Assembly (NCBI GenBank): GCA_002269645.1
Contig: NIVC01002999.1
Location: 1 to 64,000 of the forward strand
Origin: Macrostomum lignano
Lineage: Eukaryota
Reading direction: 5' to 3'
Length of the DNA stretch: 64,000 bases
Part shown: piece by piece, positions 1,157 to 61,483 of the stretch
Layout of the letters: every line of letters starts with the position of its first letter
Position numbering within the stretch: the first letter of the stretch is position 1
Notes under the pieces: model-generated
What the model was told of the DNA's origin: nothing
The model's input: only the letters and a program-made list of their open reading frames with translations
Database searches by the model: none
Program-made: the position numbers and the translations under genes

Positions 1157-4100
1157 GCAATCACTGCCGTGTTTCGGTACCTGGCCATGCTTCGAAAGCT
1201 TGGACCGCAAGAGTGGTTGTTCGAGGAAGCTCGCCTAGAAGGCCAAAAAGCCCTCGATGTCGGTCTAAACGACTGGGAATACTATCCATTTGTTCGCAGC
1301 AATATCTGCCTTCAGCGATATCCGATGCAGGATCTGCTGAGAGCGCATCGAGTGCCGTGCGACTACTCGCCAACAATAATATCCGACTTCTTGAATTTGC
1401 TGACTCCCGACAGATGCAAAGTGTACGTTTTCGAAGCTGGCGTCAACAAAAACTGTCCAAGTAAGTGCTTGAGTTAATACGGTACAGAAATATTTTGCTA
1501 AGTATTCAGACTTGAAGGGAACAGATGAATGAAACAGCATGTTTTTTACAAACTAGGAACTTTTAGCTTTTGTTTAAATCTTCATCTTTTTAGATAAAAA
1601 GGTTAATTTTGACACAGTTCACACGTACAATGTATGTTGAGTGATCATGTCGATAATTTCGTGAAAGTGCATCAGGCTGCACTATTTTCAAGCACAAATA
1701 TTTGAAAGTATAGGTATTAAGAAATCTAAGCGTCCACGTCCCCTCAAAAGGCTTCTTTCTAAAATCATTCCTTATTATAGCGTAGACCAACGATCATATA
1801 TACAGATCTATCAAAGATCTATGGCGTAGACTTGTAAAACTCTTCGCAAAAGCGTCTGCTTATCCGAATTTTTTTGCTAACGTCCATCTGTATGTAGCTG
1901 TCTATGGCCAGTCCTGCCCACACTCCGGCGCGGTGCCGCACAGCGTCAAGAAGCTGGATCCCGACCTGCTGGCAGTCTGTAAAGCCGATTGGCCTTCACC
2001 AAGCATTGAATTCGACGCTGATCTGGGCTTTCCTCAGCCAACGCCTGTGGATTGCTTAGTAAGCTGGGTGCTTGTCTGAGGACTGAGGACTGATGACTGA
2101 GAACTTTTCGTCGATTAGTTAAAGTTATATAGATCACTTGTAGTATTTTTATTCCTCCAACATGTTTTTAGGCGGAGTCAGTGTCAATAAGTCAACAAGA
2201 CGACAGTTCGGCATTGTCGCGCATTGCTCGCCGTCATGAAAAACTCCTAGCCTTGCCGTCATCTGACTGCTCATTCCGCGTCATTGAGCTGACAAACGGT
2301 GTCCAAGCTATCCTGGCCAGTCGAAACAGTTTCGGAGGCCAGGAGAGTAACGAAAAATCGCTTGTGTGCACCACCCTGGGCATTGGGAGACTACACGATC
2401 CGACTGACTTTCGAGGCTTAGCAGAGCTGTGCCATCGCCTCACACTGGTTGGATCAAATCGACGCCTCAAACATTCGATGGCTTGAACGACCTGCTGCTA
2501 GACAATAGTTGTGAAGAGAATGTTGAATATGCCATGGGGGTACACGATGACCAATCAGTGTACAAGTTTACTGTTCCAGCGAGTCTAATTCCGGAAAGCC
2601 TGTTTCGCCTAGGCTGTGGATTGGTCAATCCCGAAATTAGCAACGAAAGCGTCGAACGCGAGCTGCTGTCTGGTCAGTTCAGGCGCCAGATTCCAGCCCA
2701 GGACTGGTTGGAGCGCTGCTCGGGAAATCTCACCCATCCCTACAATCGAATGGCGAAAGGTGCCCAGAAAACTATTCGATCCTACACATCCGAGGAACTA
2801 AAAACTCGCTTGATTGCATTTTTCAATGAAAACTACTCTGCGAACTTGTTGAAGCTGGCTATAGTGGACAGCAGGTCTCTTGACGAGTTGGAGGTTAGTT
2901 TGCGAGCCGTATAAAAAAATCCTATTGGAAGTAGGCACACTAATACTCGCAAGTTAATAACGAAGCCTTCAGATATGCGTGGTTTAATAACTTTGTACTC
3001 ATTGCAGAAACTGGTGGCAGCTCATTTTGGAAGCATGCGGAATTTGTCAATCAACCAGTTGAAGATTTCAACGCATCCGTACGAAGGAACATTGATGGGC
3101 GTAAAGGTAGGTGCTTCAGACTTTATGTGTGTATTTTTGTGTACGTTTAATAGCAGCAGACAAGGAGTATAGACTCGCAAATTAGAATGTCACATTAGAG
3201 AGCGTTCTTCTTGTTCAGCTTACATTGGTTCCCCGACCAGAAGTAGAACCCGAGGACGCTCTAACCTATGAACTCCTGCCTAAAATTACACAATAGCTTA
3301 CATTGGTTCCCGACCACAAAAGTAGAACCCGAGGACGATCTAACCTATGAACCCCTGCCTAAAATTACACAATAGCTTACATTGGTTCCCGAACACAAAA
3401 GTAGAACCCGAGGACGCTCTAACCTATGAACTCCTGCCTAAAATTACACAATAGCTTACATTGGTTCCCGACCACAAAAGTAGAACCCGAGGACGCTCTA
3501 ACCTATGAACCCCTGCCTAAAATTACACAATAGCTTACATTGGTTCCCGACCACAAAAGTAGAACCCGAGGACGCTCTAACCTATGAACCCCTGCCTAAA
3601 ATTACACAATAGCTTACATTGGTTCCCGAACACAAAAGTAGAACCCGAGGACGCTCTAACCTATGAACCCCTGCCTAAAATTACACAATACACTTAACTA
3701 ATCTAGGTTCGCAGCAACTGTCTGAGTTTAGGTCGAAAACTTTACATGGTTTTCCCCTTGCCGGAGCAAACAAAACTGCACTTGACTTCGCCGGACATGC
3801 TCGTGAGCTACTTGATCAACAACCGGTGCAAGGGGAGCATTAGCGACTGTCTCGAGCGGCGTCATTTAAGTACAAACGTGTTTGGACAACTGGTCAACAG
3901 AGGTTCTGTAGGCTTCGACTCCTACTGCGTGACTGTTTTCCACCAGAATAAAGAGTTGGAGATGGCAGAGAGTGAGAACAAGGTGTGTACGAATAGCGAT
4001 TTACATGCGTTTGTTGCGTATACATTGTTGCGTATATCACACGCTGTTCTTTCTAGAGAAGTCGTGCGTCCGACGCTCTCATGTCACTCACGACTTGAAG

Positions 4101-7100
4101 GTCGGGGTTCGATTCCCGATCATACTGGAACAATTTTTGTCCTTTAGCAAGACACTTAACTCTGCATTGTTTCAAGTTCACCCAGCTGTAAAATGGGTGC
4201 CAGCATTAGGAGGAGCAATTAAGGGTGGTGTGTTGCGATCCCAAAGTTCTTGGACTGAACAGCCGTACGCAGCCTTCAGATGCGCCGCCCCAAAGCTTCG
4301 GCTGAGCTGTCGGTTGCACATAGCCCAATTAGGGAAGGTTTAATGAATTATTATGTTTTTATCCTCTTTAAGAAGAATCTGACTGTAAAAAAGTTTTCAC
4401 AATGATCGACAACCTTCAATAAACTTCAATAAAAATCAGACGTACGCGTCTATTGGTTAAGATACCTTTAAAAAAATTTCACTATCGCAAGCTTTTAAGC
4501 TCATATTTTACAGACTCAGTAAAATACCACACTTATCTTCAGATAATCACAATAGTATTTCGCTATCTCGCAATGCTGCGCCAAATTGGTCCACTGGAGT
4601 GGCTCTACAACACTTTCCGCGTAGAAAGACGCAAGGGTCAGACATTTGACGACGAAAATTCTTCTACTGGGCCTCGTTGGAAGCTGAACCCGTTGCAGTA
4701 CTACTGCGACCAGCTGCTAGAGTGCCACATGCAGCGCTACCCTCTGGAGAGCTTGTTCACTGCTCGGTACGCGTTGCCTGAATACTCGCCTCGGGCCATT
4801 ACTGACTTTCTGGAATTTTTGAAGCCCGATAATTGCAAGGTGTTCGTTTCAGGCTTTGGCACAGACGAGTCTCATATGTGCACCTTTCTGTGTAAGTTGT
4901 CCTTTAATCTACAAAATGGTTACTAATTAAGTATCGGATAATTTAAAATCACTTATGACGTGATCTTCTTCGTTAGATTACTGATTATTCCATCCTTTCA
5001 CCCGCAGCTCCTGATGGCAAGCTCTGCTGCGAGCCGGATGGCCCAAATTTCTGCAGTATGGAAAAGCTCAAACCGGAACTGATTGCCACCTGCTCAGCTG
5101 CTTGGCCTTCTTCATCGTGCGAGTTCGATACTGAGCTGAAGCTGCCAAAACAGAATCTGTTTTTGTGCTCCGATTTTAGTCTGAGGCCCGACGAGACAAC
5201 TGATCAGGTCGGTATGGATTCCTAGCGGTGATGCGGTGGTCCAGATCTGTGTTAGGGTAGGTTAGGTTAGGGTAGTCGGATAGCTATAGTTCTAAGAGGG
5301 GCTTTTAGTGCTGCAGCTAATCAAGTCGACCGTTGAATCGCAGACAGAGTGGAAGCACACGCTCACACATGGTGTACAATGCCTATGACTTCATGGCTGA
5401 ATATGAATTGCAAGAATTGTACGGAGGAGTAGTTGTGTTATTGTGTCGACTTTTTTAAATTTCAGCAACCACAAGGACCGCGGCTGCTACGATTCGAAGC
5501 CGGGCCGCACACACCAGCCGCTCGCTTCTGGTTCCAGCAGGATAACAGGCTCCAGACTCCGATTGTCTTCATCTCAGTCGATTTGGTGACTTCGCCTGAG
5601 CCGCTTGTGACCGACTGCGCCTCGTCCGTCATGCTGGATATTTTTGTCGTGCTCCTAGTCGACCAGCTCAACAGCCTTGAAAGCCAAGCCAAGCAGGTTG
5701 ATCTACGTTTAAAAGTGTCGCGCAGCAAACAGGGCATTCAGGTGTGCTGCAGCGGCTACAGGCAGCCCCTGCCAAGTCTTGTGGCTGCCGCTCTGAGTCG
5801 GATTTTTGAGCTGAAGATTACGGAACATGCATTTCGTAAGGTGAGCTGTGCACAGTGTCTAACTAGAATTTTCCCGCCGACGAATATTTCCTGACGAGTT
5901 TGGCCTTGGGGATTCTTCTTAACTGCTCTGAACATATTTTTAAACGAGGCCAGCTGTTGAGGGGGCGCCAGCTACAGAGGGGGTGCCAGCAAACAGAGGG
6001 GACGTCAGCTACAGAGGGGACGCCAGCTACAGAGGGGACGCCAGCAAACAGAGGGGACGCCAGCTACAGAAGGGACGCCCAGCTACAGAGGGGGTGCCAG
6101 CTACAGAGGGGTGCCAGCTACAGAGGGGGTGCCAGCTACAGAGGGGGTGCCAGCTACAGAGGGGACGCCCAGCTACAGAGGGGGTGCCAGCTACAGAAGG
6201 GACGCCCAGCTACAGAGGGGGTGCCAGCTACAGAGGGGCGCCAGCTACAGAGGGGGTGCCAGCTACAGAGGGGACGCCAGCTACAGAGGGGACGCCAGCT
6301 ACAGAGGGGTGCCAGCTACAGAGGGGACGCCAGCTACAGAGGGGACGCCAGCTACAGAGGGGGTGCCAGCTACAGAGGGGACGCCAGCTACAGAGGGGAC
6401 GTCAGCTAGAGAGGGGACGTCAGCTACAGAGGGGACGCCAGCAAACAGAGGGGACGCCAGCTACAGAGGGGACGCCCAGCTACAGAGGGGACGCCAGCTA
6501 CAGAGGGGGTGCCAGCTACAGAGGGGACGCCAGCTACAGAGGGGGTGCCAGCTACAGAGGGGGCGCCAGCTACAGAGGGGGCGCCAGCTACAGAGGGGAC
6601 GCCAGCTACAGAGGGGACGCCAGCTACAGAGGGGACGTCAGCTACAGAGGGGACGCCAGCAAACAGAGGGGACGCCAGCTACCGAAGGGACGCCCAGCTA
6701 CAGAGGGGACGCCAGCTACAGAGGGGGTGCCAGCTACAGAGGGGGCGCCAGCTACAGAGGAGGTGCCAGCTACAGAGGGGACGCCAGCTACAGAGGGGGT
6801 GCCAGCTACAGAGGGGGTGCCAGCTACAGAGGGGGCGCCAGCTACAGAGGGGGCGCCAGCAAACAGAGGGGGCGCCAGCTACATTGGGATGCATTAATTG
6901 CCTACATGGATCATCGGCTCAGCAAATATAAATTAATGGGTTATCAATCTCCTCATTGTTTCAGGCTCGACGGAAAATATCTGCCCTGGAGGCGCAGAAA
7001 ACGCACAAAACGGACTTGTGCAAGTCGCAGCTTGCTATGCTACTAAATAGCGCCTGCTCTTGGCACTGGTCGTATCAGGATAAAAGAGTCGCTATTAACG

Positions 7101-8885
7101 GTATGTTTGCTAATATCTAAATATTCAATACAAAAATTCCAGACGAACTCTCTTCTCTACAAACCTTCACTTCAGAAACAACTCTGGAGAGCTTCATGAT
7201 ATTTGTCCAGCGATTCAGCAGTCAGATTCAGCTATCGTCGCAACCGCAACGTCTGGTCAGCGAGGACGAGGACGAAGAGGACAAACGAACTGACGCGGCT
7301 GTTGCCGTCATGAGCCTTTGGTCACGAATCTCCCTAGCCGAGGACGAAGAAGTCGTAGAGGAGAGCTCCGCGCTGCAGCAGACACTTCAGGAGGAGCAAG
7401 ACCAGCAGCAGAAGCAGCAGATTCCGCGCCAACTGTTTGCCGAGATTCTCGTTTATGGCAACGCTACAGCTAAAGATGCTGAAGCAGCCAGTCAAATCAT
7501 TTTGAACGCGCTGCCATCACCGACTCAGCGTACCACTGAGACAACATTTGAAGCAGTGAGGCGTCGAGTGTATCTACTCCCCAGCGGCAGCCATCACGTG
7601 CTCAGCTGACAATATCTGCTAATTATCAGAGGAAATCAGGGTGCGCTGTAGTACTTCAGGTGCCAAAACCGGTGCCAACTGCCGACACAAATATGGGCTT
7701 TGAAGACGCGATTAGACAAGACTGTTTGTTTTATCTGCTAATCGAGGTTTTGCAATGCCGCGGCGAGATGATCAATGACCCGTTGGATCGAGCTATAAAG
7801 ATACTAATACAGAGAAATTATCACGCCTATGTTGTTACATTTGACGTTGTGGATTCACAGCACCCGACAAAGGTAGGCCTATGTGTGAGAGTAGTGAATT
7901 AACAATGTCACTGAACCGAAAGGGTAGGCCGATGTGTGAGAGTAGTGAATTAACAATGTCACTGAACCGAAAAGGTAGGCCGATGTGTGAGAGTAGTGAA
8001 TGAACAATGTCACTGAACCGAAAGGGTAGGCCGATGTGTGAGAGTAGTGAATTAACAATGTCACTGAACCGAAAAGGTAGGCCGATGTGTGAGAGTAGTG
8101 AATTAACAATGTCACTGAACCGAAAAGGTAGGCCGATGTGTGAGAGTAGTGAATGAACAATGTCACTGGATCGAATCAGCTGCTTGTTTCCTATCGCTCT
8201 TTTTTCCAGATTGAAGAACAAGTGGAAAATTATATCGAAAAAATTGGCGATTACATTTCCTCTCTGTCAGAGGAGTCATTCCGATACTGCTTATCAAGCA
8301 TGGAGAAATCGATGCGCAAAGAAATTCCTACTACTGTCCAGGAGCAGCACGATTCCCATTGGCGCAGCATCACTCACGGTGTGCTGCGCTTCGACCGGGA
8401 CGCAAATTTGGCCAAGTGTTTAGACGCAGTGGTTGGAGGCATCAAGAAGGATTGTCTGCTTGAACTATGGCGGGTAAGTAGCAAAGTAGCAAAGTACCAA
8501 TTTTTTACCAGCGTTTATCAGATTCAACTTGAACTTAAGTTGGAGCTTATATAATTAGTCTTGTATAATATATACCGTTCGCGCCGCTTCCAGTCCTGCT
8601 TAAAGCGGGGATCTCCGAACCGGCGCAAGCTGTGCATCCATCGAATCTCCAGGGCGGCTTTCCCCGACGGCATCAGCGAGGCTGACTACGCTGATTACCC
8701 GGTGAGTCCTGAAGCCATACGCACTTGTTGACTCTTGTAGCGTTGGATGCGTTCTCCTTAATTAATTCTCTAAAAAACTCTATTTCCAGGGAACCATCAT
8801 ACGTAACAGAAATCTTTTCAAGCAAAGCCTGCTGCTAAGTCCCTTGCCATCGGTACAGAATTTGCGTCCGAACTCTGATGTCTAA
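1157..8885 (+). CDS. Insulysin/IDE-like (M16A) pseudo-peptidase, paralogue 1 (5' part not in window; two frameshifts)
   Basis: GT-AG exons with matching phases: 1157-1460, 1898-2058, 2172-2893, 3008-3106, 3707-3982, 4543-4891, 5008-5207, 5466-5840, 6965-7100, 7176-7872, 8210-8473, 8594-8701, 8790-8885 (TAA; AATAAA at ~8927). IDE-like blocks: FRYLAMLRKLGPQEWLFEE, RVIELTNGVQAIL, GIGRLHDP, NENYSANLL, FWFQQDNRLQTP, RFDRD, RRKLCIH, IIRNRNLFKQSL. One-base deficits at ~2465 and ~7602. Confidence 0.85.
3217..3689. repeat. 79-bp intronic tandem repeat, 6 copies
   Basis: agcttacattggttcccgaccacaaaagtagaacccgaggacg... starts at 3217, 3295, 3374, 3453, 3532 and 3611. Confidence 0.95.
4060..4350 (+). mobile_element. 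tRNA-derived SINE copy
   Basis: B-box GGTTCGATTCC at 4106-4116. Body (gcaagacacttaactctgcattg...cacccagctgtaaaatgggtgccagcattag...ttggactgaacagccgta) is shared with copies at 10.9-11.2, 22.2 and 32.0 kb. Confidence 0.8.
5950..6882. repeat. ~18-bp GC-rich intronic minisatellite, ~50 copies
   Basis: Unit gccagctacagagggg(g/a)(t/c), with occasional 1-bp length variants; lies between exons 5466-5840 and 6965-7100. Confidence 0.95.
7870..8168. repeat. 51-bp tandem repeat (~6 copies) beginning at a splice donor
   Basis: aggtaggcc(g/t)atgtgtgagagtagtgaat(t/g)aacaatgtcactgaaccgaaa at 51-bp period; the first copy overlaps the donor at 7873. Confidence 0.95.
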
Positions 8886-10126
8886 GCGAGACGCCATCGA
8901 GTTTCTTGGAATTTTGAATTTGCAGCAATAAATAAACAGGACTCAGTTCAACCTCAATAAAATATCGGTAGTTATACACTAATATTTACCGGTGAAAACA
9001 TGCACGAACAACTTTGTCAATGTTTAATATGAGAATGGTTTTGCTCAAGAAAGCTCTTGTTTTCGGTTACCCTTGGTGTACTTACTTGTGCAGAAGACTA
9101 GCAAAGACCAATTATCAGATGGTAAAAGAATAAACCTATTTGTTCATTTTTACATAAATACGCTGTAGCCTTCGTTCACGGTGTAAAATTATTTTGACGA
9201 TTTTTTTTTACAAATTTTGCTTTTTAAATCATTTTGTAACACAAAGATCCGTTAGAAGCTCCCCAGAAACGCCAGATCGTCAGTTAAAAAACTGAATTTA
9301 AGTATTCATGCTCATAACTAGCATCTGCAAAGTTATAGATACACAGATACTAGCATCGTAGATAGGACAGTACACCACATGTAGATGTAGAAGTGTTTGG
9401 TCTTACTCTAACGATCACCAAAGGAAAGGTTGTTAAATTTTTGTTCTATAATGTTGCCGATCCTCGTGGACATAAAGAGATGAATAAACTCCTATGTCTG
9501 CGCCAACAGGTCAACTCAACAGTGTCCAATGCTCTTTGTCGTATGGGTATTAAACAAGCCAAGCAAAAACTAAAATAATAATGAAGCCAAACAGTAGCCT
9601 GTAGCTGTAGTACTCTTCTCTTGACTTAACTGAATCAACTGCTGTAGAGGACGCAATGTGAAGATGAGAGCGAAAGGCAAAAGGTTGGCTTTCCTCGATT
9701 ATTTTGTTGCTCCCTGTTTAGTGCTGTGAAGGCAGCAGGTAACAATTAAGGTAATTTGAGCGTAAATGCAAGGTTTAAATTTATTTTATTCTGAATACGT
9801 CATAAACTGGTGTTGAGCATGCAGCTCTAGTTCAAGAAAAAATCGGAGAGAAGTTTTCATTAGTCGCGTTATATCCTATCTAAACTGTACAAAGGTCTAG
9901 TTTAGTTTTAGGTCAGTTTTGGTGATAGATGTTTAATAAATTCTGTTGAAGCTAAAAACCAAAACTCAACATTCTCGATGTCTCCTAACCAACAAACATC
10001 TACTTGTGGTCCGAAGGGACAGCTAATACACTATTTTTTCACCTTGATATGATTGTCTATGGGCATAACTTGAAAAAACCGCATAGTCTTTCAATTCTTG
10101 CATAGCTTCAATTCTTAGAGCTCAAG

Positions 10127-13100
10127 ATGCAACAGAGCCTAAAGCTTCCACAGCAGCAGTCGCCATCCCAGTCCAAGCAGCCTGAATCGGTAAATCAGCG
10201 ACCAAGTGTCACAATGTCCATAAAAGTTCGCGACAACAATGTACCCTTAGTAAAAGGAATCGAAGCTTACAAGCACACAAAACGACGATGCCTGGAGCTG
10301 TCGAACGGTGCCAGTGTTCTTCTTATTAGCTGGTCAAACTTGGAGCAGATTCAGGGCTTCTTCGATCCCTACAGCGTGTTTCTTTGCGTGAACCTCAACA
10401 TTGGCCGGCTTCACGACCCACCCGATTGTGTAGGCCTTGCCGAGTTGTGCCAACGACTGACGCTCTGCGGCTCCAAAAAATATCCGAACGACGAGCAGGC
10501 TGGTAAGTCAGTCAGTCCGTCTGAATCTGCTTGGCTAATTTCGCGGTGCGCTGTGGCTTTTTAAAATGGAACAGCATTTCAGCTACTAGCTGAAAGACCT
10601 AGTAGGGACGATTGACAATTCACCTGAACACCAAAATCTCGTTAACCGCTTGGTGATCAGGATGCTAGCACACCACCGGTACAGTATACGATCGCTACTC
10701 GTACGACGTACACGTTGCTCTGGTGCATCTATAACTGGTTAAAATGCCACGACGATTGATGGTTCAAGTTATTGAATCACTCTAATCGCAGTCTGTGCAG
10801 CATAACGGCGCCAATTTAGGCCCTCAAGCAAGGCTGACTGCTGTATGGGGTTTGTACGCTCTTAATTATAATAGGAATCATGATCGAAAGGACTGCAGTT
10901 ATCATTATTTAATAAGAATTGATTGCACCTGTCCCGATTGGGCCGGTTGTGCAACTGACAGCTCACCCGCAGCTATTGCGTGGCGCATCTGAAGGCTGCG
11001 TAATGGCTGTTTAGTCCAAGGACTGGGAGGTAGCCACACACCCTCAATAACCCCAGCTAATGCTGGGTACCCATTTTACAGCTGGGCGAACTGAAGCAAT
11101 GTAGAGTTAAGTGTCTTGCTCATTGCTCAAGGACACAAATTGTTCTAGTGGGATCTGGAATCGAACCCCGGACCTTTCATTAGGGAGTCCAATGTTCTAA
11201 CCACTAGGCTGCAATCCAGTTAACATTTAGTAATGTTAATAAACATTGTTTAGTATAATATCCGTGTTTGTTTTGTACATTGTTCTGAAAAAAAGTTTTG
11301 GTGTATAAGAGATCCCTAGGGAAATCGAAATTTGGTTCTTACTCAAGAAAAAATGCGAGTTGCTGACAAAACTGCGCCTAATTTGCAGGTCTGCTCACGA
11401 AAGTTCAGAGAGAAAGCAGCTCATACTCAGAAGAGATCACAATCGGGCAGCCGCAACAAGAAAGCCATAGCAACTCAATATTGTCCGAATCATTCGATTT
11501 CGACCCGCTCGCTCGAATTGAGGTCACCGAGGATCAGACAATTTACACTTTTACCCTGGAAACCAACTATCAGTTGGAGATGTTTCTGGACCATCTCTGC
11601 GCCGGGTTGCAGTGTCCGCTGTTTAACAAGACGGCAGTGGAGCGGCAGGTGCAAATCTGGCAGGCAGTCTCTAAGACGAATGCGCCCTCCCTAATAGACC
11701 AGTTAGAGCACTGCTCGGGTGACGCCAAGCATCCCTACAACCGGCTGCACCGTCAAAGTGGCCGAACTGTTGATAAATTATCTACCGATGAGCTAATTAA
11801 CCAACTGAAAGAATTTCACTCGAAAAACTATTCCGCTAATCTGTTGCGATTGGTGCTGTCGTATGCGAAGACACTGGACGAAATGGAGGTTGGTAAAAGT
11901 CGTTAATATGTGGTTGTAAAGATTACCATGGCTATAAATAAATTATGCACCAAATACTCGAATTGACAGGCAATGGTGCTGGAGTCTCTGGGTGGAATGC
12001 AAAATTTATCGCTTCCACGTATTCGCTTTCCTCGTCACCCGTACGATGGTACGGAAATGGCAGTAAAGGTAAAATTGTGCCGTAAGCCTGAAGCCAATTC
12101 TTTCAAAGTATTTCAATTTTTATTGCGCCAAGAGACACAAAAAGTTTATTAAAATAAAATGGCAACACACTAAAATTCAGCCACAAGCAAAGCTAGCGTT
12201 TTAAGATAGCGATAAACGCTACTGCAAAGAAGGGCGTCGTATGTTTTGGGCAGCCAATTTTGGGGTCATGTCCCCTTGACCAAAGATCATATATACACAA
12301 GATAGGCGACTTTTCATTAACCACTGGCCATAGAAGCTAATGTGAAAAATTTTGCTACTCGCGATAGCGCGAAGATCAACTACTGAACTCCATTTCGTCA
12401 GTAGTTTCTGCAGTGCGTGCGTCGTTATTAGTTTGATTGAGTAGTAGCTTTTATTTAATTTATGAGAAACAGCTAGGGAACCAGGAGCAGAGACTTTTGC
12501 ATAGTATTGGATTAAAATTTGACCTTTTTAGAACATCCATTATGCATTGGTGTGTTTAAGAAGCTTTAAATGCTGGCTAATCAATTTTACCCTTTTGAGT
12601 ATAACGCACGTCAGTAAAACAGTTTCAAAGTCCAGTGTTTACTATCGAAATGTCTATAAATAGCAACAGTACTTTACGTTTGCAGAAGGTCTTGATTGTT
12701 TATTATTACACTAATTACAATATTTCAGATATAATTGGCCTTATGACACATATTTAATTTTGCTAATTTTTACGTTTTCCCAGACATCGGAAGTCGTTTC
12801 CTTTTACGAGTATTTCATTGAACCCAAAAACAGATCCAATGAAAAAATTAAAGCAACAACATTAACCAAGTAATTATTCGAATAGAAAAGTTTTAATAGT
12901 ACTACCAATAGTCGTTCAGAATGAATAATATTACTATTAATAAGCCAAATAATTAGCAAAGTTAAATCCGTGGGCTTTATTATATAATCTACGTGGTACT
13001 ACTCACAAACATAATATATTAACGGTTTGATAGTACAATGTAGTAAAAACTGTTTTACTGCCGTGTACAGCTGATTTATAAGAAAATCTAGTATAGCGTC

Positions 13101-16100
13101 TTTCTACGTGTTCTTCATTCCTCTGTGCCCCCATGGCTACATGTACGCCACCACCAACAAATTCTAGGAGAAATGGTGATAAGACATTGAAAACCTATCA
13201 ACTCATTCTCTAGGTTCGCATCAAAGGTAAATCTCTCGGTGGAATTTACATTGTGTTCGCACTGCCCGACCAGTCTACTAAGTATCTGTCGTCGCCAGAT
13301 TTATTCTTAACCTTTCTGATGCACGTTGACGAGCGCGGCGGGTTGCAAGACTGTCTGCACAGATTCGGACTGGGCTATTGTCAGTGCCGACTGTTGCCTA
13401 GCGGCAATCTAGGCTTTGATTCGTACTGCATCGCCATCAAAGGCATGTGTAAAGTTCGCGATGCGGAGAACAGAGTGAGTAGATCTATATGTGCTCAGAT
13501 TATATAAAGATTGGTCAAAATGCATATTAAATAGTCTCGCTGTAGAACGGAGAGGTGAACTTAGGTACGCGGAGTGGGGCTCAAAGTAAAGCTCGAATCA
13601 CTGTGGAAATCTTACCAGACCAGTTCGGGACACTCGGCAGGGTTTCATGGTAGGAAGTTTATCAGACACATCACGAACTAGCTGGGACACTTACGAACAA
13701 CTATGCGCTATCGTGAAAGGGGTTGTCTTGCGATTCAGAGCCATGAGGCTAATCCCCAAGGTACAGAACGTGTACATAACCTGACAAATAAAATATCAGG
13801 GCCGATGTACACCCTGTGTGAGAGCGTTTATGAGTTCCCAGTGCCTGCTTACAGTATTGGTACACTTGTATGGGATCAGGAGTCTGCAGAGTGGGCTGAA
13901 TTGCTAAACGGCTGGTTGTAGGACGATGTAGCCAAACGCGTTGCACCATAATTAATGAATAATTAACAATAAATATATGCACTTGTTTCTGACCCGTGTA
14001 ACGAATCAATACTAGACTTCCACGTATTATACATTTTCATGTACACCTGTTATATTTAGCGCTCCATTTGCCAACACGCAGGCAATTACAGCAGTGTTCC
14101 GCTACCTGGCCTTACTGCGCGCCGTTGGCATTAACGAGCTTCAACGTAGAGAAATTTGTAAAACGCACGAATTGACTTATAATCCATTTAGTTTGACCGA
14201 GTTCGGTCCGCCGCCCGAGTGCCTGCCGCGGCGCATGCAGCGATATCCGCTCAGAGACCTGCTGGTAGCTCGTTTTAAAATGTCAAACACCGGGTCCGGC
14301 GTGCTCGTGGAATTCCTTAGTAGCTTATCACCGGATCGCTGCAAAGTTTTTGTTTCCGATACCAATGCCAGCAATAGGGAAGGTGCAACCAGTCAGTGTA
14401 AGTGTGCATTTTTACCCAGTGAACCGACACACTTTACCAGCGTAATATTTTGCCATTACAGTTTGGAAGTGACAAAAACAATTTGAAAAACGTTGGCCAT
14501 ATATATTATACTTCAGTTGGTTGATCAGATGTTGTCAGCACTCATTTTAGCGCCGCAGGCACTCATTTTGGCGCGGCGGGCACTCATTTTAGCGCCGCAG
14601 GCACTCATTTTGGCGCGGCGGGCACTCATTTTAGCGCCGCGGGCACTCATTTTGGCGCCGCGGGCACTCATTTTGACGCCGCGGGCACTCATTTTGGCGC
14701 CGCAGGCACTCATTTTGGTGCCGCGGGCACTCATTTTGGCGCCGCGGGCACTCATTTTAGCGCTGCAGGCACTCATTTTAGCGCCGCAGGCACTCATTTT
14801 GGCGCCGCGGGCACTCATTTTGGTGCCGCGGGCACTCATTTTGGCGCCGCGGGCACTCATTTTGGCGCCGCCGGCACTCATTTTGGCGCCGCAGGCACTC
14901 ATTTTAGCGCCGCGGGCACTCATTTTGGCGCCGCAGGCACTCATTTTAGCGCCTCGGGCACTCATTTTGGCGCCGCCGGCACTCATTTTGGCGCCGCCGG
15001 CACTCATTTTGGCGCCGCAGGCACTCATTTTAGCGCCGCAGGCACTCATTTTAGCGCCGCGGGCACTCATTTTGGCGCCGCAGGCACTCATTTTAGCGCC
15101 GCAGGCACTCATTTTAGCGCCGCCGGCACTCATTTTAGCACTCATTTTAGCGCCGCAGGCACTCATTTTGGCGCCGCAAGCACTCATTTTGGCGCCGCGG
15201 GCAATCATTTTGGCGCCGCAAGCACTCATTTTGGCGCCGCGGGCAATCATTTTAGCGCCGCGGGCAGTCATTTTGGCGCCGCGGGCACTCATTTTGGCGC
15301 CGCGGGCACTCACTTTGGCGCCTCGGGCACTAATTTTGGCGCCGCGGGCAATCATTTTGGCGCCGCGGGCACTCATTTTAGCGCCGCGGGCACTCATTTT
15401 GGCGCCGCGGGCACTCACTTTAGCACTCATTTTAGCGCCGCAGGCACTCATTTTGGCGCCGCAAGCACTCATTTTGGCGCCGCGGGCAATCATTTTGGCG
15501 CCGCAAGCACTCATTTTGGCGCCGCGGGCAATCATTTTAGCGCCGCGGGCACTCATTTTGGCGCCGCAAGCACTCATTTTAGCGCCGCGGGCACTCATTT
15601 TGGCGCCCCAGGCACTCATTTAAGCACCCGTTGGCGACGCCCCTGCCCCCTGCCCTTCATCTGACCCCACCCCCAACTAGAGATTAAAAGCTTTGTAATA
15701 CATCGGTATTGGCGCAAAAGTAGAGAACTTTATAATCAATATCAATATACTGTAAATATTCGTAAACAAAGTAGACATCGTCATAAATATATAGATGATG
15801 TCAAGACACAAAAATGGAGTCAGAACACAGATTTTGGGGGACGCAAAGAGGTACATTTACGTGGGCATAAATAATAAAGAAAAAAGGGTAAAATTTAAAA
15901 GCAACGAAGAATACACTGCAAAAACTTTTTTACTTTTTTTACAAAGGGTCTAAGTGTATTCGGCCAAGTACTATTAGATTAGCTTCTTGCCACATAACTA
16001 AGTTTAGGTTTTCACGAGCGTGAATGACAGAATCATAAGGCCAGTTGAAGTGTCAGTTATCGATAGTATCATTTTTTTCACAGCCCCAGACAGCAGCAAG

Positions 16101-19100
16101 CCGGGAGAGCGCGTCAAGTTTACAGTGGAGAAAATTCCATCGGAGCTCCTGTCGGCTTGGGCCGCCAGCTGGCCGTCGAAGTCGGAGTTCGATGCCGACT
16201 TTATTCTGACACCGATCGGTCCCAATCCGACGCTGCCTCGTCCGCATCGATTTTTGCCCTGGAAAATTCCCTCGGAGGTGAGTGCGAGTTTAGCAATGAA
16301 AAATGTCTTGCTGGAAATTTTTATGCTGCCATAAATAAAATCAATAGACACATCGATTAGCAGAAGGATCGTGTTCATCCTAACGCAACGCCTTCGGCGA
16401 CATCGTCTCATACCCAAGTCTGCCCATTTCGCTGACTCCTGGGCACATACAAGCGTGCAAACACTCATACACACGCTCACACAGGGTTTACATCGGTTCT
16501 AACTTTCCAATCGTCAGGCATGTAGACTCTCTGGGCCTTAAGTTAATGCGAGTCGCATACGAGCGTAAAAACCTCCCCAGCCAATTTTCGTGTGCACAAT
16601 CCCTTATTTAATGTGGCGTTCGGGAATGGGACGTGTTTACACTCTGCTCTCATTTATAATTACGTGTATACTTTGATATCTTAAGTAAGATGCCTCTTTA
16701 AAGTCGCTCATAATAATCCGTTTCTCTACCCTACAGTTCTCTACTATTCGATCAGAGTCTTCAACGTTGATAAAATCTCGTTGCAACGATCTCGGGGCAC
16801 CGGTGTCGCTCGAATACGCTACGACAAGGTGCAACTGCTTGGAGTTAACGAACGGCGCCCAAGCCATTCTGCTGCACAGCGAAGGTCTTGAAAATAAATC
16901 ATTCGTCTGCGTCAGCCTTGGCGTCGGTCGGTTGCACGACCCACCGGACTGTGCGGGACTGGCTCAGCTGTGCCAGCGCCTGACTCTGCTTGAGTCGAAG
17001 AAGTATCCAAACATAACCGAGTGCTTGCACAATCTTCTCTATATAAACAGCTATCAAGGGTCGCCGTACTACGCGACGAGCGTTTCCGACGACCAGACAA
17101 CTTACCGGTTCGAAATCGACAATTCATTCTTACATGAAAGTCTAGACCGTCTTAGTGCGGGTATCCTGAGCCCTGAATTTACCGAGTCTAGTCTTACCCG
17201 TGAGCAACATCAGAACTTCTACAGTTGCAAGATTTCTGCCTTGGATTGCCTACAGCGCAGCTCGGGAAATTCAACTCATCCGATCAATCACCTGATACAG
17301 GGCAATAATAAGACCGTGGGTTTGCTTGAGTTCAAAGAGCTGCACAAGCATCTAACTAGCTTTCATTCGCGGTACTACAGCGCTAATCTGCTGCGTGTAG
17401 CAGTGTCTAGCAGCCACAGCATGGAAGACATAGAGGCAAGAGATCATTTTTATGTCACTTTTTTAATTGAGTCAGGGGTGCTAAACAAACAGTTTAATGT
17501 TTCAACAGGCAATGGTTCTCACAGCATTCGGTGGAATGCCGAATCTGTCAGTATCGCCGCTGTCCTGCTATACTCACCCGTTCGAGGGCTCTAAGTTGGG
17601 CGTCAAGGTAAGCTTTATCTCTCTCATGGTCTCAATTACCAGGACCACTAGAAATTGTGTCGTATCAGAATTTAGCACTTACCGTCTATGAAAAAATCTA
17701 ATTGAAGGCTAAATTTCGCTCAAAATTTGCGATCGTCGTAATATCGATCGTAGGAGGTAAGAAATTGTCGAATAAGTGATTGAAGACGATAGAACGTAAC
17801 TGCTACGTCCTGATGCAAACTAAGCTTCTAGTGATCATTCAAGATTTTTACAGGGCTTATAAATAATAACTTTGCATTACCTAACTTGTCCAGATTCGAG
17901 GAAAGTCATTAAGCCTCGGCGGAGCGCTGCACATCGTGTTTCCTCTGCCCGACCAGACGGAGTTGTACAAAACCTCACCCGATCTGTACGTTAGTTACTT
18001 TCTCAACAGTGACTGCGGCGGCAGTTTAAACGCCTGTCAGGATCAGCTCAATATTGCAACAGTATCCGCCGGGATGCAGAACTCCGGTTCGCTAGGATTC
18101 GATTCGTATTGTGTGACAGTGTTATTATCGAATACTACTGATCTAAGTAAAGCTGATCTGATTAAAACTGAGAACAATGTGAGTACTTTATAAACAGAGC
18201 AGGATTATTTACAAAAAACAAGTTAGTCGGGCCTTTGGACACTGCCGAAAATAAAGGTGGCAGTCTCTCTAGCCATGACAGATGAAGGCAGTGCAGGTAA
18301 AGGCCGGTTCACATTACCACTAATTGCTATGCTGGTCAAAGATTGCCCAAACCAACAATGCACAGTCGATTCAGGTTCATTTAAAAAATAAATTTGAGCA
18401 ATATTTTGTCCCCAGAGTTACTGATGGTACTACGAAGTGGTCTTCTAATAATATTGTAACTTTAAATTTCTTACATTCTTCGGACGTCCAATACTTAAGC
18501 TTATAACTTATTTTGCTTTTTAACTGTGTAGATAGACACTTTCAACAACCTTCACCTATCAAACCATTTTAAAATCTGTAATAAATACTCGTGCTATTGC
18601 TAGCTATATTTTATTGATGTTAACGTGGACGAATCTCAACATTTTTAGGCAATAACAGCCGTATTCCGGTACCTAACAATGCTGCGACAGCTGGAGCCTC
18701 GGGAGTGTCTGTTCAACATGGTCCGTCTTGCTCAAAGAAGGCTGTTCAATTTCGACCGCGAAGGCGAGTGCATGGCGCCGGGCAGTGAAAAACTCGACCC
18801 GTTGCAGCGGTTCTGCGATGAGTCGCTGCAGGTGCATTTGCAACGGTATCCAGTTAAGGAGCTGCTTACTGCTAGAAGTGGCGCCAAGCTTGAATACTCG
18901 GCACAGGATATCGCGGCATTCCTTCGCTTGCTTGTTCCAACCAACTGCAAGATTTTCGTCTCCGATTTTGGAGCAGATGCCGATCACGAGTGCTCGTTGT
19001 TAAGTGAGAATTATTTCTGTTTCTTATGGTGTATTTTTACCGCAGCACCAATCTGCTCATCTTTCCTGGTGTGATAAACGCAAGGGCGTTGCCAGAATTC

Positions 19101-22100
19101 TTCTTTGGGAGGCTGAGTCGTCTGGGGGCTTTAGCACAAAGGGCTTTAGCACCAGGGGCTTTAGCACAAAGGGCTTTAGCACCAGGGGCTTTAGCACTCT
19201 AGGGGCGCCAGCACCAGGGGCACCAGCACCAGGGGCGCCAGCACCAGGGGCGCCAGCACCAGGGGCGCCAGCACCAGGGGCGCCAGCACCAGGGGCGCCA
19301 GCACCAGGGGCGCCAGCACCAGGGGCGCCAGCACCAGGGGCGCCAGCACCAGGGGCGCCAGCACCAGGGGCGCCAGCACCAGGGGCGCCAGCACCAGGGG
19401 CGCCAGCACCAGGGGCGCCAGCACCAGGGGCGCCAGCACCAGGGGCGCCAGCACCAGGGGCGCCAGCACCAGGGGCGCCAGCACCAGGGGCGCCAGCACC
19501 AGGGGCGCCAGCAACAGGGGCGCCAGCAACAGGGGCACCAGCACCAGGGGCTTTAGCACCAGGGGCTTTAGCACCAGGGGCGCCAGTACCAGGGGCGCCA
19601 GCACCAGGGGCGCCAGTACCAGGGGCGCCAGCACCAGGGGCGCCAGCACCAGTGTGTAAAGTACATTGCCATAAAAAATCCGTCGTATTTTCGTCCGTCA
19701 CTCCCCAGCACCTGGCGGCAGTCTCTGCTGCAAGCCGAAGAAGGCAAACGAGCTGCACACGCTGGAAAAGCTGCCATCGGATCTTCTCACCGCCTGCTCA
19801 GCCAGCTGGCCAACTGCCTCCATCATGGCGGACACTTTGATCAAGCCGCCAAGGGAAAACTTGTTTATCAGTGCCGATTTTCAACTTAAATCGAGAGAGA
19901 AAAAATTTGAGGTATTCAATAATCTTTATTTATGTTTTACTATGCTTCTGCAAGGGAAACTAGCAAGTAGGTAGTGGTTTGTCGTGCAACCAGGGCCAGA
20001 TCCTGATCCAGATCCTACCAGACAAAATCAAGTAGAAATCTCTATGTATTAGTTCAGTACATGTACCTTGATTATGTGCTATTTGATATCTTTGCACTCA
20101 AAGCAGTCTTGTTTAGATCATAGTTTCTAAGAAACCAAAGAGACGGCAGTCCTTGCTCCTTTCCACGTCTAATTTTAGTCGTCCGGTCCTCAGCAGCTGC
20201 TGATCAAACAGTTTCCCAACGGCACCAGCATTTCTGGTGCTCGACTCTGGTTCTGTCAGGACGGCCTGCAGTCGTTCAAAACTCCTCATTGTTTTATCGC
20301 AATTGATCTGCTGACGTCGCCTGGATCGATTGTCACAGATTGCAGGTCTTCCATCCATCTGGACTATCTGGTGCAGCTGATTGAACTTCACATTCAGGAG
20401 TTAAAGGAACTGGCTTTAGAAGCCGAACTAGATTTGGAAATTTCCCGTAGCGACAGTGGAATTCAGATCTGCGCTGCAGGCTACAGTCAGCCTCTGCCCC
20501 TGCTGATTTCGACTGTGATGCAGAAGATTACAGAGCTGGATATTACTGAAACTTCGTTTTCAAGGGTAAGAATTGCTTTGACACGTACGGGGGGAATTGT
20601 CCGCAGTTTCTGACACTTTTAATTCCATTTTTATACAAATTTGCTGTCATGGTAAAGTGCATGGCACATTACTTATTTCTGATAAATTTAATCCCGGATG
20701 TGTTGGTCTGTTCATTAAAAATTTGAGCTTTTAAGCAAATTTGAGCCTGTTTCGCAACCTCCACACTCGCCGGAACTCGCGCCAGCCGATTTCATTATTT
20801 TTCCGCAGCTGAAGGGGCGAGCCGTTCGATGGGGTGAGTTGATGCCAGCAAGGATCATTTGGAAGACAAGATCTGGTGCAGACTCCCCAAGGTATTTCAG
20901 GACAGTGCTGTTTTAAAGCGATTGACGGGATGCTCAAGCCATAGAGGAAGTGTGTTGCTACAGGTGGAGAGGATGCTCAAGCCGTGGAAGAAGTGAGTTG
21001 CTACAGGTGGAGAGGATGCTCAAGCCGTGGGAAAAGTGAGTTGCTACAGGTGGAGAGGATGCTCAAGCCGTGGGAGAAGTGAGTTGCTACAGGTGGAGAG
21101 GATGCTCAAGCCGTGGGAGAAGTGAGTTGCTACAGGTGGAGAAGATGCTCAAGCCGTGGAAGAAGTGAGTTGCTACAGGTGGAGAGGATGCTCAAGCCGT
21201 GGGAGAAGTGAGTCGCTACAGGTGGAGAAGATGCTCAAGCCGTGGGAGAAGTGAGTTGCTACAGGTGGAGAGGATGCTCAAGCCGTGGGAGAAGTGAGTT
21301 GCTACAGGTGGAGAGGATGCTCAAGCCGTGGGAGAAGTGAGTTGCTACAGGTGGAGAAGATGCTCAAGCCGTGGGAGAAGTGAGTTGTTACAGGTGAAGA
21401 GAATGCTCAAGCCGTGGGAGAAGTGAGTTGCTACAGGTGGAGACTGTGTTGAGAAGGATGTCTTAATTAAAAGGCGATTATGATAATTTAAGCCAATGAT
21501 CTGTTTATATAAGGACAAACCATCGCCTTTTATATCCGTTGTCACAGTCACTGCTAAGACTATTAGTGGCATCGCGACGCTTTCTCAAGCATAAATTTCC
21601 AACGCACATGACCATAATACGAGATTGAATTTATCAGAAGAAAGAAATGTACCGCTTTAATACTCGTATGGCACCAACAAATTTGTGTTTGCAGCCGCTT
21701 CCAAAAGTGTCCGAACTTTCCGGACAACCCTCTTCCATGCATTGACTGTGATGAGTTGAATTTTACTACTAGTTCTGAACAACTCTACTAGTAGTAGCGC
21801 AGCAGAGTTTCGCCGATTTTTTCAGGCTCGTTTATCAGTGAAGTCCTCTCTGAAGAACGACGAGGACGCTGATTCTTCGGAGGCACTGCAATGCTTGACG
21901 CTCATTCTGGGGACGCCGGCTGCGATGAACTGGCCGCACCGGGACAAGAGCTCAGAAGCGAAGAGTAAGAAGAGCTCAAAGATAATAATTATTTCATGCT
22001 TAAATAAGAAAGCGTCATTCAAAGAGAGTTGAGGTATAGTAGAGTTCAGTGCGGAAATGCATATTAGAAAAATTAACAATGATAAATTTCCCAACGGTTT

Positions 22101-25100
22101 CCTGCAAACAGACACCTATGAATTATCCAGTAATAATAAATACACCTGCCACAATGGGGGGGGCACACAGCCTCAATTACCCCAGCCAATGCTGGCACCC
22201 ATTTTACAGCTGGGTGAACTGAAGCAATGCAGCTAGGCTACAACCGCAACACTAGGCTACAACCCCAACACTAGGCTACAACCCCAACACTAGGCTACAA
22301 CCGCAACACTAGGCTACAACCCTAACACTAGGCTACAACCCAGGGTTTTTTTTACCCCAATTAGTACCCCATGGGGTATTAGTCAACTGATTTGGGGTAC
22401 TATTTTGCCCATTAATACCCCAGAATGGGGTACTATTTTTTCGACTTTAATTCAAACAAGTTAAGCTTTTTTCTAAAATTTGCTGTTCAATTAAAATTCT
22501 GACTGGGCTGGTATGGGTCTTTGTACTAAGGTATATCCACTCGTGTGGTGAGTCAGACTGTCAGGCTAAAACTCTAAAAGTGAGAGAGGGTTGGAATTGG
22601 AAACTGATCTAATTGGAATTAGATTTAGATTAGATTGCGATACTGCAACGCCATCTAATTTACTTGAAATTTCGAAATCTAGCTTGTTCAGCCTTCAACG
22701 AAAGACACAAGAATGCAGTCAAACATTAGCAGCTGTGTTTTAACTCTAAATATAGTCTTGATTAAGTTATTTGACTGCGCCAGAATCAATTTTTATAAGA
22801 ATTCAAGTAAACTACAGAGGCAAAATTAGAAATTTCATGGGGTATTACTCCTCCAAAATGGGGTACTACTCAGAGGCTTGATACCCCAATTCGGGTACTA
22901 ATCAATAGCGAAAAAAAACACTGCTACAACCCCAACACTAGGCTACAACCCTAACACTAGGCTACAACCCAACACTAGGCTACAACCCCAATACTAGGCT
23001 ACAACCCCAATACTAGGCTACAACCCCAACACTAGGCTACAACCCCAACACTAGGCTACAACCCCAACACTAGGCTACAACCCCAATACTAGGCTACAAC
23101 CCCAACACTAGGCTACAACCGTAACACTAGGCTACAACCGTAACACTAGGCTACAACCGCAACACTAGGCTACAACCGCAACACTAGGCTACAACCCTAA
23201 CACTAGGTTACAACCCCAACACTAGGCTACAACCCCAATACTAGGCTACAACCCCAATACTAGGCTACAACCGCAACACTAGGCTACAACCCCAACACTA
23301 GGCTACAACCCCAACACTAGGCTACAACCCCAACACTAGGCCACAGAAAGGATCGAGAAAGGGCCAGTGACAGCAGAGGCAAAGAAACTCAGCGCCAAAC
23401 ATGTCCGACTCTCGCACCACACGATCCCCTTGGTTCGATTCGGTGTGCAGCCCCATTTATCGTAATTGTGAACAAAAATATTGGTCTGACCGTTGTCGCA
23501 CGATTCACACAGAGTGTACATGCCCGATGATTAGAAAGTCATGGCTGCTGTACACCTTGTATGAGCGTGTGGATGAGTGCGTGTCTGAGTACAATATCTG
23601 GAAGAATGCCCCCCTGTGCTGATTGTGGAACAATTTCGCCGATATTCAGAGCAAACTCTCCTGCAAATATCTATTAATAAGTGACAAAATTGATTCCCTA
23701 ACATTCGATTATTTGTCTATTTCGTTTAAGACAAAACAAGAAATAATATTTTTGCAGAGGCAACCTATGAAAGCGTACTGAAGTTTGCCCAGGACAACTA
23801 CGGTCCATTGTTCACTCGTTTACAAAAGCAGCAGCAGCAGCAAAAGTCACCGCAGCCACAGCAGTCTCCGCCCCGACAGCTGTTTATAGAGGTGCTTGTT
23901 TATGGCAATGCCAAAGCAAAAGAAGCAGTGGCCGCGGCAAAGAAAATCCTGGACAAAGTCTCTTCGCAACAGTCTCCAGCAGCAGCAGCAAAAGCTTTGT
24001 CACCTTCATCTTGGGAGTCGCTGAAGAGCCGAGGCGTCCTACTTCCACCGGGAAGTCACTATCTGCTTAAATTGCCGAGTAGCACAAAATCAGGCATGGC
24101 GTCGAGTTGCGTGGTCGTCTTTCAGTTCGTTACGCCTCTTTCTCTTAAAACTGGTGAAAAAATTGCCCAGGATTTTCTTTTTGATTTGCTTCTGCGGATT
24201 CTTCGTCTGAACATTGAACAGAGCGACGTACCCGGTTGTGCTCAGGTCCAACTGGAGCAGATACCCGGCCATCACGGAAATATTCTTGTGATCGATGCCG
24301 CGTCTATCACTCAGCACCCAACTGTGGTACGTGCAGCGTTATGAAATGCTCATTTTATTATTAGGATTTATTATATAAATAATCAGGGATGTCATGTATC
24401 AGAAATCAAGGATGCATCAGGGATTCCAGGATCAGGGATGCCAGCATCAAGGATGCCAGCATCAAGGATGCCAGCATCAAGGATGCCAGCATCAAGGATG
24501 CCAGCATCAAGGATGCCAGCATCAAGGATGCCAGCATCAAGGATGCCAGCATCAAGGATGCCAGCATCAAGGATGCCAGCATCAAGGATGCCAGCATCAA
24601 GGATGCCAGCATCAAGGATGCCAGCATCAAGGATGCCAGCATCAAGGATGCCAGCATCAAGGATGCCAGCATCAAGGATGCCAGCATCAAGGATGCCAGC
24701 ATCAAGGATGCCAGCATCAAGGATGCCAGCATCAAGGATGCCAGCATCAAGGATGCCAGCATCAAGGATGCCAGCATCAAGGATGCCAGCATCAAGGATG
24801 CCAGCATCAAGGATGCCAGCATCAAGGATGCCAGCATCAAGGATGCCAGCATCAAGGATGCCAGCATCAAGGATGCCAGCATCAAGGATGCCAGCATCAA
24901 GGATGCCAGCATCAAGGATGCCAGCATCAAGGATGCCAGCATCAAGGATGCCAGCATCAAGGATGCCAGCATCAAGGATGCCAGCATCAAGGATGCCAGC
25001 ATCAAGATCAGGGATGTCAGGGATCAGGGATCAGGGACGCCAAAGCTAACTCCAATAGTGCTGCATACTTGTACATGTATACTTTTGATATTCATTTGTT

Positions 25101-61449: not shown

Positions 61450-61483
61450 AATACAGAGGGTGGCATGAGAGGCCACGACCCTC
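61440..61483 (+). promoter_or_regulatory. -1 ribosomal frameshift signal
   Basis: G GGA AAC heptamer immediately before the gag TAG, a 9-nt spacer, then hairpin gagggtggc...gccacgaccctc. Confidence 0.8.

Follow-up and report, generated by a model that had tools for sequence, protein, structure and literature searches.

Is a peptidase family whose zinc sites have all been lost still maintained, and what do its genes look like? This question is raised by a stretch of 64,000 nucleotides (nt) from the flatworm Macrostomum lignano (GenBank assembly GCA_002269645.1, contig NIVC01002999.1, positions 1 to 64,000 of the forward strand, in the following called the window), in which three sites correspond to the HxxEH zinc motif of M16 peptidases such as insulin-degrading enzyme (IDE) and show other residues in its place. 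While a sequence-only reading had taken them as three paralogous copies of a pseudo-peptidase, we found that the three sites fall in two tandem intron-rich genes and are N-lobe units of these genes, each of which carries an internal duplication of its N-terminal half. The two genes probably belong to a Macrostomum-specific offshoot of IDE (M16A), a lineage-specific and selected family of pseudo-peptidases with a three-lobed build.

Zinc sites and gene architecture

The stop-free stretches of the window are short and broken up, the locus being eukaryotic and containing introns, and a plain listing of open reading frames (ORFs) yielded fragments only. Gene models were therefore rebuilt by paralogue BLAST and a splice-site search, and BLAST between the stop-free fragments revealed four M16 N-half units in series, named A to D. 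Within the window, dead motifs are read in frame on the + strand in unit B (ELCHR for HxxEH, context GLAELCHRL, 2424..2438), in unit C (ELCQR, context GLAELCQRL, 10442..10456) and in unit D (QLCQR, context GLAQLCQRL, 16965..16979), while the first dead site of gene 1, ELCLR in unit A, lies upstream of the contig start and outside the window. A phmmer comparison of the exon with the third site to human IDE chains gave E=1e-22 over about 200 residues and placed QLCQR under HFC(E/Q)H, confirming the earlier proposal that the motif is dead at these positions. The exons as well as the full proteins of gene 2 and gene 1 (P0001 and P0002) match Peptidase_M16, M16_C and M16_M of Pfam, the full proteins above the curated cut-offs, and a full-length alignment to IDE was obtained in which the second unit is alignable over all four IDE domains. 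For the IDE numbering, which we take to be the chain index plus 29, the motif positions correspond to His108, Glu111 and His112, consistent with the alignment.

The same loss is seen throughout the family. Eight dead units were aligned, four from genes 1 and 2 (ELCLR, ELCHR, ELCQR, QLCQR), two from a third gene (QLCNE, RLCQR) and one each from the protein models P0019 (ELCAE) and P0020 (ELLAG), and His108, Glu111, His112 and Glu189 are absent from every one of them, whereas both intact IDEs of M. lignano keep all four residues. The general base Glu111 is replaced in the eight units by L, H, Q, Q, N, Q, A and A, respectively, and an arginine occupies the His112 position in five of them (ELCLR, ELCHR, ELCQR, QLCQR and RLCQR). 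It had also been stated that the downstream glutamate ligand is not conserved, and this holds for all eight units, as the column equivalent to Glu189 shows a gap or V, R or G, with a 6-residue deletion common to five of the eight. In genes 1 and 2, where the ligand is expected about 76 residues downstream, units A, B and D have a gap in this column and unit C has V. Looking at the region from Glu182 to Glu189 of IDE, unit B (SVERELLSGQF, 2648..2680, +) keeps the equivalent of Glu182 and has the Glu189 column deleted, unit C (AVERQVQIWQAVS, 11634..11672, +) has a ligand column without Glu, and unit D (LTREQHQNF, 17193..17219, +) again keeps the Glu182 equivalent, its 6-residue deletion removing the segment with Glu189.

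For a complete active site, M16A enzymes also rely on an R/Y pair in domain 4 (PMC12731061). The corresponding segment of unit B (AIKILIQRNYHAY, 7792..7830, +) shows K for Arg and keeps the Tyr, and that of unit D (VQLEQIPGHHGN, 24246..24281, +) shows Q for Arg and H for Tyr, the alignment being uncertain at both places; likewise, the LRTxxQLGY motif of IDE appears absent or degenerate in domain 4 of units B and D in a region where the alignment is unreliable. From these sequences we infer that a catalytic zinc site cannot form, since the two His, the Glu ligand and the general base are missing, and as no catalytic zinc means no water activation, the proteins would not be peptidases. The segment preceding the motif (e.g. 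16929-16964), GxGRLHDPPDCxGLA, varies less between the dead units than between active IDEs, which hints at a new constraint in this part of the protein. An AlphaFold2 model of unit D based on a 6-sequence alignment reached a mean predicted local distance difference test (pLDDT) of 50.5 and a predicted template modelling score (pTM) of 0.35 and was unusable.

Regarding the architecture, domains 3 and 4 are present only in units B and D. The units span positions up to 2058 (A, partial), 2172-8885 (B), 10127-16277 (C) and 16737-26650 (D), and A and C end exactly at the intron preceding the first domain-3 exon in B and D. Each gene thus comprises about 1650 aa with an N-lobe, a second N-lobe and a C-lobe (N-N-C), corresponding to six M16 domains with two dead sites, and the chain lengths are 1650 aa for P0001 (gene 2) and 1653 aa for P0002 (gene 1). 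In the gene 2 protein, Pfam identifies two stretches each of Peptidase_M16, M16_C and M16_M, and the hidden Markov model (HMM) of domain 1 matches P0001 at 52-304 and 613-827, revealing two N-lobes about 550 residues apart. The duplicated N-half consists of domains 1-2 plus linker, about 550-580 aa. The full spliced protein was needed for homologue searches, as the raw 275-aa ORF used as query gave no match.

Gene 1 (Mlig028065 type) is present with its 3' part only (1157..8885, +), as the contig begins inside the gene; it was derived from the splice-site search and paralogue alignment. Unit A provides the last two exons of the first N-lobe (1157-1460 and 1898-2058, +), and unit B, encoding the second N-lobe and the C-lobe, starts with six exons (2172-2893, 3008-3106, 3707-3982, 4543-4891, 5008-5207 and 5466-5840, +) followed by the last five (6965-7100, 7176-7872, 8210-8473, 8594-8701 and 8790-8885, +, ending with TAA). 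The A+B product matches UniRef A0A1I8JA03 (P0002), and the exons are 98-100% identical to the intact copies on the sister contigs L002 and L003. Gene 2 is annotated in GenBank as BOX15_Mlig000040g5 (PAA53923.1, identical to P0001; 10127..26650, +, 17 exons). Its unit C exons are located at 10127-10502, 11389-11888, 11970-12068, 13214-13474, 14082-14397 and 16084-16277 (+), and those of unit D at 16737-17435 (with a GC donor), 17509-17607, 17894-18178, 18649-19003 and 19709-19911 (+), followed by the last six at 20179-20565, 21826-21964, 23758-24326, 25193-25462, 26341-26445 and 26555-26650 (+, TGA). When C and D are joined, one unbroken frame runs from the ATG at 10127 to the TGA at 26650, and its translation is identical to PAA53923.1. 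The contig record agrees with the window in every base over 127-36650, and the annotated gene has the same coordinates in both.

That A is joined to B and C to D follows from the phase-0 splice sites, from second units lacking an ATG and from gene models that cross the junctions. The A-B intron (2059..2171, +, 113 nt, phase 0) has the donor TTA/GTAAGC and the acceptor TTTTTAG/G and gives an in-frame junction, whose peptide PVDCLAESVSIS is found in P0002, P0013, P0014, P0016, P0017 and P0018. The C-D intron (16278..16736, +, 459 nt, phase 0) with the consensus donor GAG/GTGAGT and the strong acceptor CTACCCTACAG/T is also in frame, and its junction peptide WKIPSEFSTIRSE is found in P0001, P0008, P0009, P0010 and P0011. 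Altogether eleven gene models, coming from two assemblies and two annotation pipelines (GenBank, RNA-seq-based, and UniRef from ML2), cross the lobe junctions. In the first exons of B and D no in-frame ATG precedes the conserved domain, and the sole in-frame ATG is located far inside of it. If the C-D intron is left unspliced, the frame stops at a TAA (16332-16334) with an AATAAA (16334-16339) directly after it, and this AATAAA after unit C might represent an alternative 3' end leading to an N-lobe-only product.

Two further features of the introns were observed. The 73-nt intron 17436-17508 uses a GC donor (GAG/GCAAGA), whereas the paralogous introns in units B and C use GT, and it is kept on the sister contigs (98.6% identity on L002). 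The introns of both M16 genes also contain minisatellite arrays with periods of 15-79 nt and 6-51 copies (3217-3690, 5959-6883, 7864-8175, 14538-15621, 19148-19652, 20928-21443, 22923-23345 and 24414-25006), which produce long spurious ORFs and whose length varies strongly between genomic copies, the intron 5841-6964 having 1124 nt here and 289 nt on L002.

Family tree, selection and expression

To look into the origin of the family, we scanned 1.84 billion representative proteins by HMMER using unit D. The eight best matches were all from M. lignano, followed by ordinary IDEs of other organisms at about 1e-42, and no relative closer than an ordinary IDE was found in any other species of this collection. 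The family had been called conserved, which is true among the paralogues and the redundant genomic copies of M. lignano but does not extend further, as no orthologue was found elsewhere. A third tandem gene, Mlig021631/Mlig015450 (P0169, 1602 aa), is located directly upstream of gene 1 on sister contigs (L002 1329-2946; L004 1-2399) and encodes six domains with the two dead N-lobes mentioned above (QLCNE and RLCQR), so that the full cluster has at least six dead zinc sites. In addition to the two shorter dead models P0019 and P0020, M. lignano possesses two intact IDEs with HFCEH (P0022 and P0023), which are the closest relatives of the dead clade; the identity to the active IDEs is about 28%.

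In the neighbour-joining tree the eight dead units form one clade with 100% bootstrap, which joins the two intact M. lignano IDEs, again with 100%. Within genes 1 and 2, unit A pairs with C (56%) and unit B with D (51%) only weakly, and the inner branches do not resolve with eight units; the pairings are compatible with an internal duplication having occurred first but are not decisive. Intron positions and phases are all kept between units that are only 33-47% identical. Because the dead units are monophyletic, mostly have the arginine at the His112 position and show the Glu189 deletion in five cases, a loss before duplication, as proposed in the sequence-only reading, is the parsimonious explanation. 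The tree and the identical junction design in the three genes suggest the order of events: an IDE duplicate would first have lost His108, Glu111, His112 and Glu189, the five exons of its N-terminal half, which encode domains 1-2 and the linker, would then have been duplicated within the gene between two phase-0 introns, and the gene for the resulting N-N-C proteins of about 1650 aa would finally have been copied in tandem.

At this level of identity the paralogous units are too diverged, with saturated synonymous sites, for calculating the ratio of non-synonymous to synonymous substitution rates (dN/dS), which was instead determined from near-identical genomic copies (L003 or the window against L002). 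For gene 1, 24 synonymous and 15 non-synonymous substitutions correspond to a dN/dS of 0.18 (binomial p=2.5e-7 for the synonymous excess), and for gene 2, 14 synonymous and 9 non-synonymous substitutions to 0.19 (p=1.1e-4). The exons diverge by 0.76% compared to 1.9% in the aligned introns, which thus evolve 2.5 times faster, and indels are plentiful in the introns, whereas the exons show none apart from two deletions in gene 1. The genes are maintained by purifying selection and are not decaying, in agreement with the suggestion that they are kept under selection, the dN/dS values not being near 1.

Expression data were located in the work of Brand et al. 2020 (PMC7336406, Tables S6 and S8), who used positional RNA-seq. 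The entry Mlig000040.g2 is listed with 4953 nt, exactly the length of 1650 codons and a stop codon, and its reads amount to 6 in the head, 724 in the +testis, 876 in the +ovary and 592 in the whole-worm fragments. It is classified as 'Testes' and flagged 'germline_FACS', and the copies g3 and g9 behave alike. The supplements of PMC5816591 contained no expression match.

Gene 2 is intact, but the window copy of gene 1 is frameshifted twice. A 1-nt deletion at 2456 (+; GGATC-AAATCG here, GGATCGAAATCG in L002 and L003) breaks the frame about 20 nt past the dead motif, and a second 1-nt deletion is found at 7603..7604 (+; GTGCT-CAGCTG here, GTGCTCCAGCTG in L002 and GTGCTTCAACTG in L003). Neither is present on the sister contigs, of which L003 is about 100% and L002 98-99% identical, while the overlapping contig NIVC01004151.1 (L004) has both, its annotated product being the 742-aa stretch between them; on NIVC01002999.1 no gene is called on the gene 1 stretch. 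The assembly, made from PacBio data and polished with Pilon, is highly redundant, duplicated blocks making up 180 Mb (PMC5730564), and we cannot tell whether the frameshifts reflect a truly broken spare copy or an uncorrected assembly error.

Further elements of the window lie downstream of the M16 genes. A single-exon ORF of 623 aa (28017-29888, +) is annotated as a gene on the contig and has no Pfam match, and a 551-aa ORF (52022-53677, +) shows an STPR repeat domain and weak OTU and peptidase C65 matches. The ORFs 41225-42772 (-), 43300-44694 (+) and 46821-47606 (-) contain domains of a protein-primed type B DNA polymerase with endonuclease VII and of an integrase (rve, H2C2); they look like remains of a Polinton/Maverick-type element and/or a retroelement and are unrelated to the M16 genes. 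A long ORF running off the window end (61326-63998, +) with aspartyl protease, reverse transcriptase and RNase H corresponds to the pol of a long terminal repeat (LTR) retrotransposon.

Possible role and alternative explanations

What could such proteins do? Non-proteolytic functions have been attributed to IDE itself (PMC8998118). In the flatworm proteins, selection still preserves the parts of every lobe that define the fold. The most likely role seems to be a non-catalytic one in the male germline, namely binding, caging or scaffolding: the retained clamshell fold would hold or surround peptides or unfolded stretches of protein, or would scaffold partners. The extra N-lobe may give a second half-chamber, compete for the single C-lobe or modulate closure, all of which is speculation. 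As a tentative idea, which we consider possible but not probable, the N-N-C single chain without an active site might be a distinct design, with one C-lobe alternating between two dead N-lobes or with lobes being swapped between subunits, and might thus represent a non-catalytic peptide or protein cage that evolved and was multiplied for Macrostomum spermatogenesis.

The coding capacity of the locus can also be read in other ways. If the whole cluster consisted of decaying, functionless pseudogenes and the dead motifs were part of this decay, the two frameshifts of gene 1 in the window, their presence in L004 and the missing gene call would be expected, and a redundant genome with 180 Mb of duplicated blocks would offer spare copies that can decay. 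Such a decay is hardly credible, however, in view of the unbroken 17-exon frame of gene 2, the intact gene 1 on two other contigs, dN/dS values around 0.18-0.19 that are significantly below 1, exons 2.5 times less diverged than introns, exon junctions that are all kept between paralogues of only 33-47% identity, and the testis-region expression of gene 2. Another reading would divide the cluster into four separate genes in an operon-like array, in which A and C are stand-alone N-lobe proteins ending by read-through and polyadenylation, and B and D are four-domain proteins whose mRNAs are formed by spliced-leader trans-splicing, the terminal AUG of the leader serving as start codon. About 30% of the M. 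lignano genes are trans-spliced and the leader ends with ...TTGCATG, phase 0 at both second-unit acceptors would put this ATG in frame, and the read-through past unit C reaches its TAA with AATAAA following at once. No AATAAA follows unit A, however, and all 11 gene models covering the junctions cross them, none of them beginning at 2172 or 16737. The models also stay fused although the GenBank annotation, which relies on a genome-guided RNA-seq transcriptome, cuts transcripts specifically at trans-splice and poly(A) evidence (PMC5730564), and the listed length of the Mlig_37v3 entry is that of the fused reading frame, which makes four separate genes quite unlikely.

Concerning the biochemical role, the proteins might still be metallopeptidases using substitute ligands, either the conserved His, Asp and Cys of RLHDPPDCxGLAxLC or residues from another lobe. 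The GxGRLHDPPDC segment with its His and Cys, being more uniform than in true IDEs, would be in favour of this, but two units have Q instead of the His, unit B has F instead of the first Cys and P0020 has L instead of the second, and a substitute metal site formed by the His and Cys of this stretch was rejected, as none of the candidate residues is kept in all units. Moreover, the general base is replaced in all eight units, five of them have lost the helix segment with Glu189 and the domain-4 R/Y motif appears degenerate, and we regard a remaining peptidase activity as very improbable. It is also unlikely, if less so, that the proteins do not bind cargo and instead regulate the two active worm IDEs via mixed dimers through the retained C-lobe. 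Two IDEs with HFCEH are kept in M. lignano and are the closest relatives of the dead clade, and it is common for pseudo-peptidases to regulate an active relative or to complete it, alpha-MPP being an example (PMC11266112), but neither co-expression nor interaction evidence points to such a pairing and the identity to the active IDEs of only about 28% argues against it.

Several points weigh against our reading of the cluster as a selected, three-lobed family of pseudo-peptidases. The unusable model of unit D leaves the packing of the lobes as well as the lack of a substitute metal site without structural support, and the dN/dS values depend on 62 substitutions between very similar copies. Expression data were located for gene 2 only, and the Mlig_37v3 entry is tied to the GenBank gene 2 by its cluster name and exact length without sequence comparison. 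Finally, the read-through stop with AATAAA just past the last exon of unit C, together with a spliced leader ending in ATG that is in frame at both second-unit acceptors, means that shorter separate products are possible.

Relation to known M16 proteins

Human IDE (M16A; e.g. PDB 2g47) shares the Pfam domain set with the flatworm proteins, which are alignable to it over four domains (domain 1 alone with E=1e-22) and, like cytosolic IDE, have no signal peptide. In contrast to IDE, the flatworm proteins have His108, Glu111, His112 and Glu189 replaced or deleted and the R/Y pair apparently degenerate, they lack a C-terminal SKL-like ending, and with the N-lobe of about 550-580 aa added in front of the four domains (about 1000 aa in IDE) they reach six domains. 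Loss of HxxEH within the M16 fold is known from alpha-MPP and the bc1 core proteins (M16B; PMC11266112, PMC12731061), which act as substrate-binding half-clamshell or structural subunit. These are, however, single-lobe subunits of about 500 aa that pair with another subunit, whereas in the flatworm all lobes are found in one chain and none is active, and according to the tree the flatworm family descends from M16A and not from M16B.

A lineage-specific M16 expansion is also seen in the INS family of Cryptosporidium parvum, in which only 10 of 22 genes have HXXEH (PMC8092296). This is an independent protist expansion whose characterised members are four-domain proteins that are secreted or vesicular, whereas the dead clade of the flatworm groups with the IDEs of the same worm, lacks a signal peptide and shows three lobes. 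When the best 150 scan matches and the further proteins retrieved were examined for two long N-domain matches, just two proteins from outside Macrostomum showed them, both of them ant models and neither of the N-N-C type. The one from Dinoponera quadriceps (XP_014469183.1, P0055) is an M16A protein with HLCQH/HLCQR, having lost the catalytic Glu and, in one unit, having His112 changed to Arg. Its two N-domains are 943 aa apart and thus belong to two complete four-domain units, His108 is kept, and with E=1e-33, a value that any IDE reaches, the protein is no close relative of the flatworm clade. The other, an M16A model from Trachymyrmex cornetzi (KYN15627.1, P0166), has two N-domains, contains internal repeats that are almost identical and could be an artefact of annotation. 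Two reviews of M16 and pseudo-peptidases (PMC11266112, PMC12731061) do not mention a six-domain, tandem or duplicated-lobe architecture, and our literature search gave no paper linking Macrostomum to IDE, M16 or insulinase. The loss of the motif in an M16A family that has expanded thus has precedents, but we found no description of one chain that combines two dead N-lobes with a single C-lobe.

M16 pseudo-peptidases are familiar chiefly as half-enzymes that complement an active partner, examples being alpha-MPP and the bc1 core proteins. In the present family, the zinc site has been lost from an entire IDE-type clamshell, which has gained a second dead N-lobe and has been multiplied in tandem under selection, with at least one gene being transcribed in the testis region, which adds a further case to the fast-evolving, lineage-specific reproductive genes of Macrostomum. 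As the genes are known from a single species to date, the practical impact is modest. The animal is accessible to transgenesis and RNA interference. If it is true that peptides are bound or caged without being cut, the family would be a natural experiment on the non-proteolytic, chaperone-like activities that have long been proposed for IDE.

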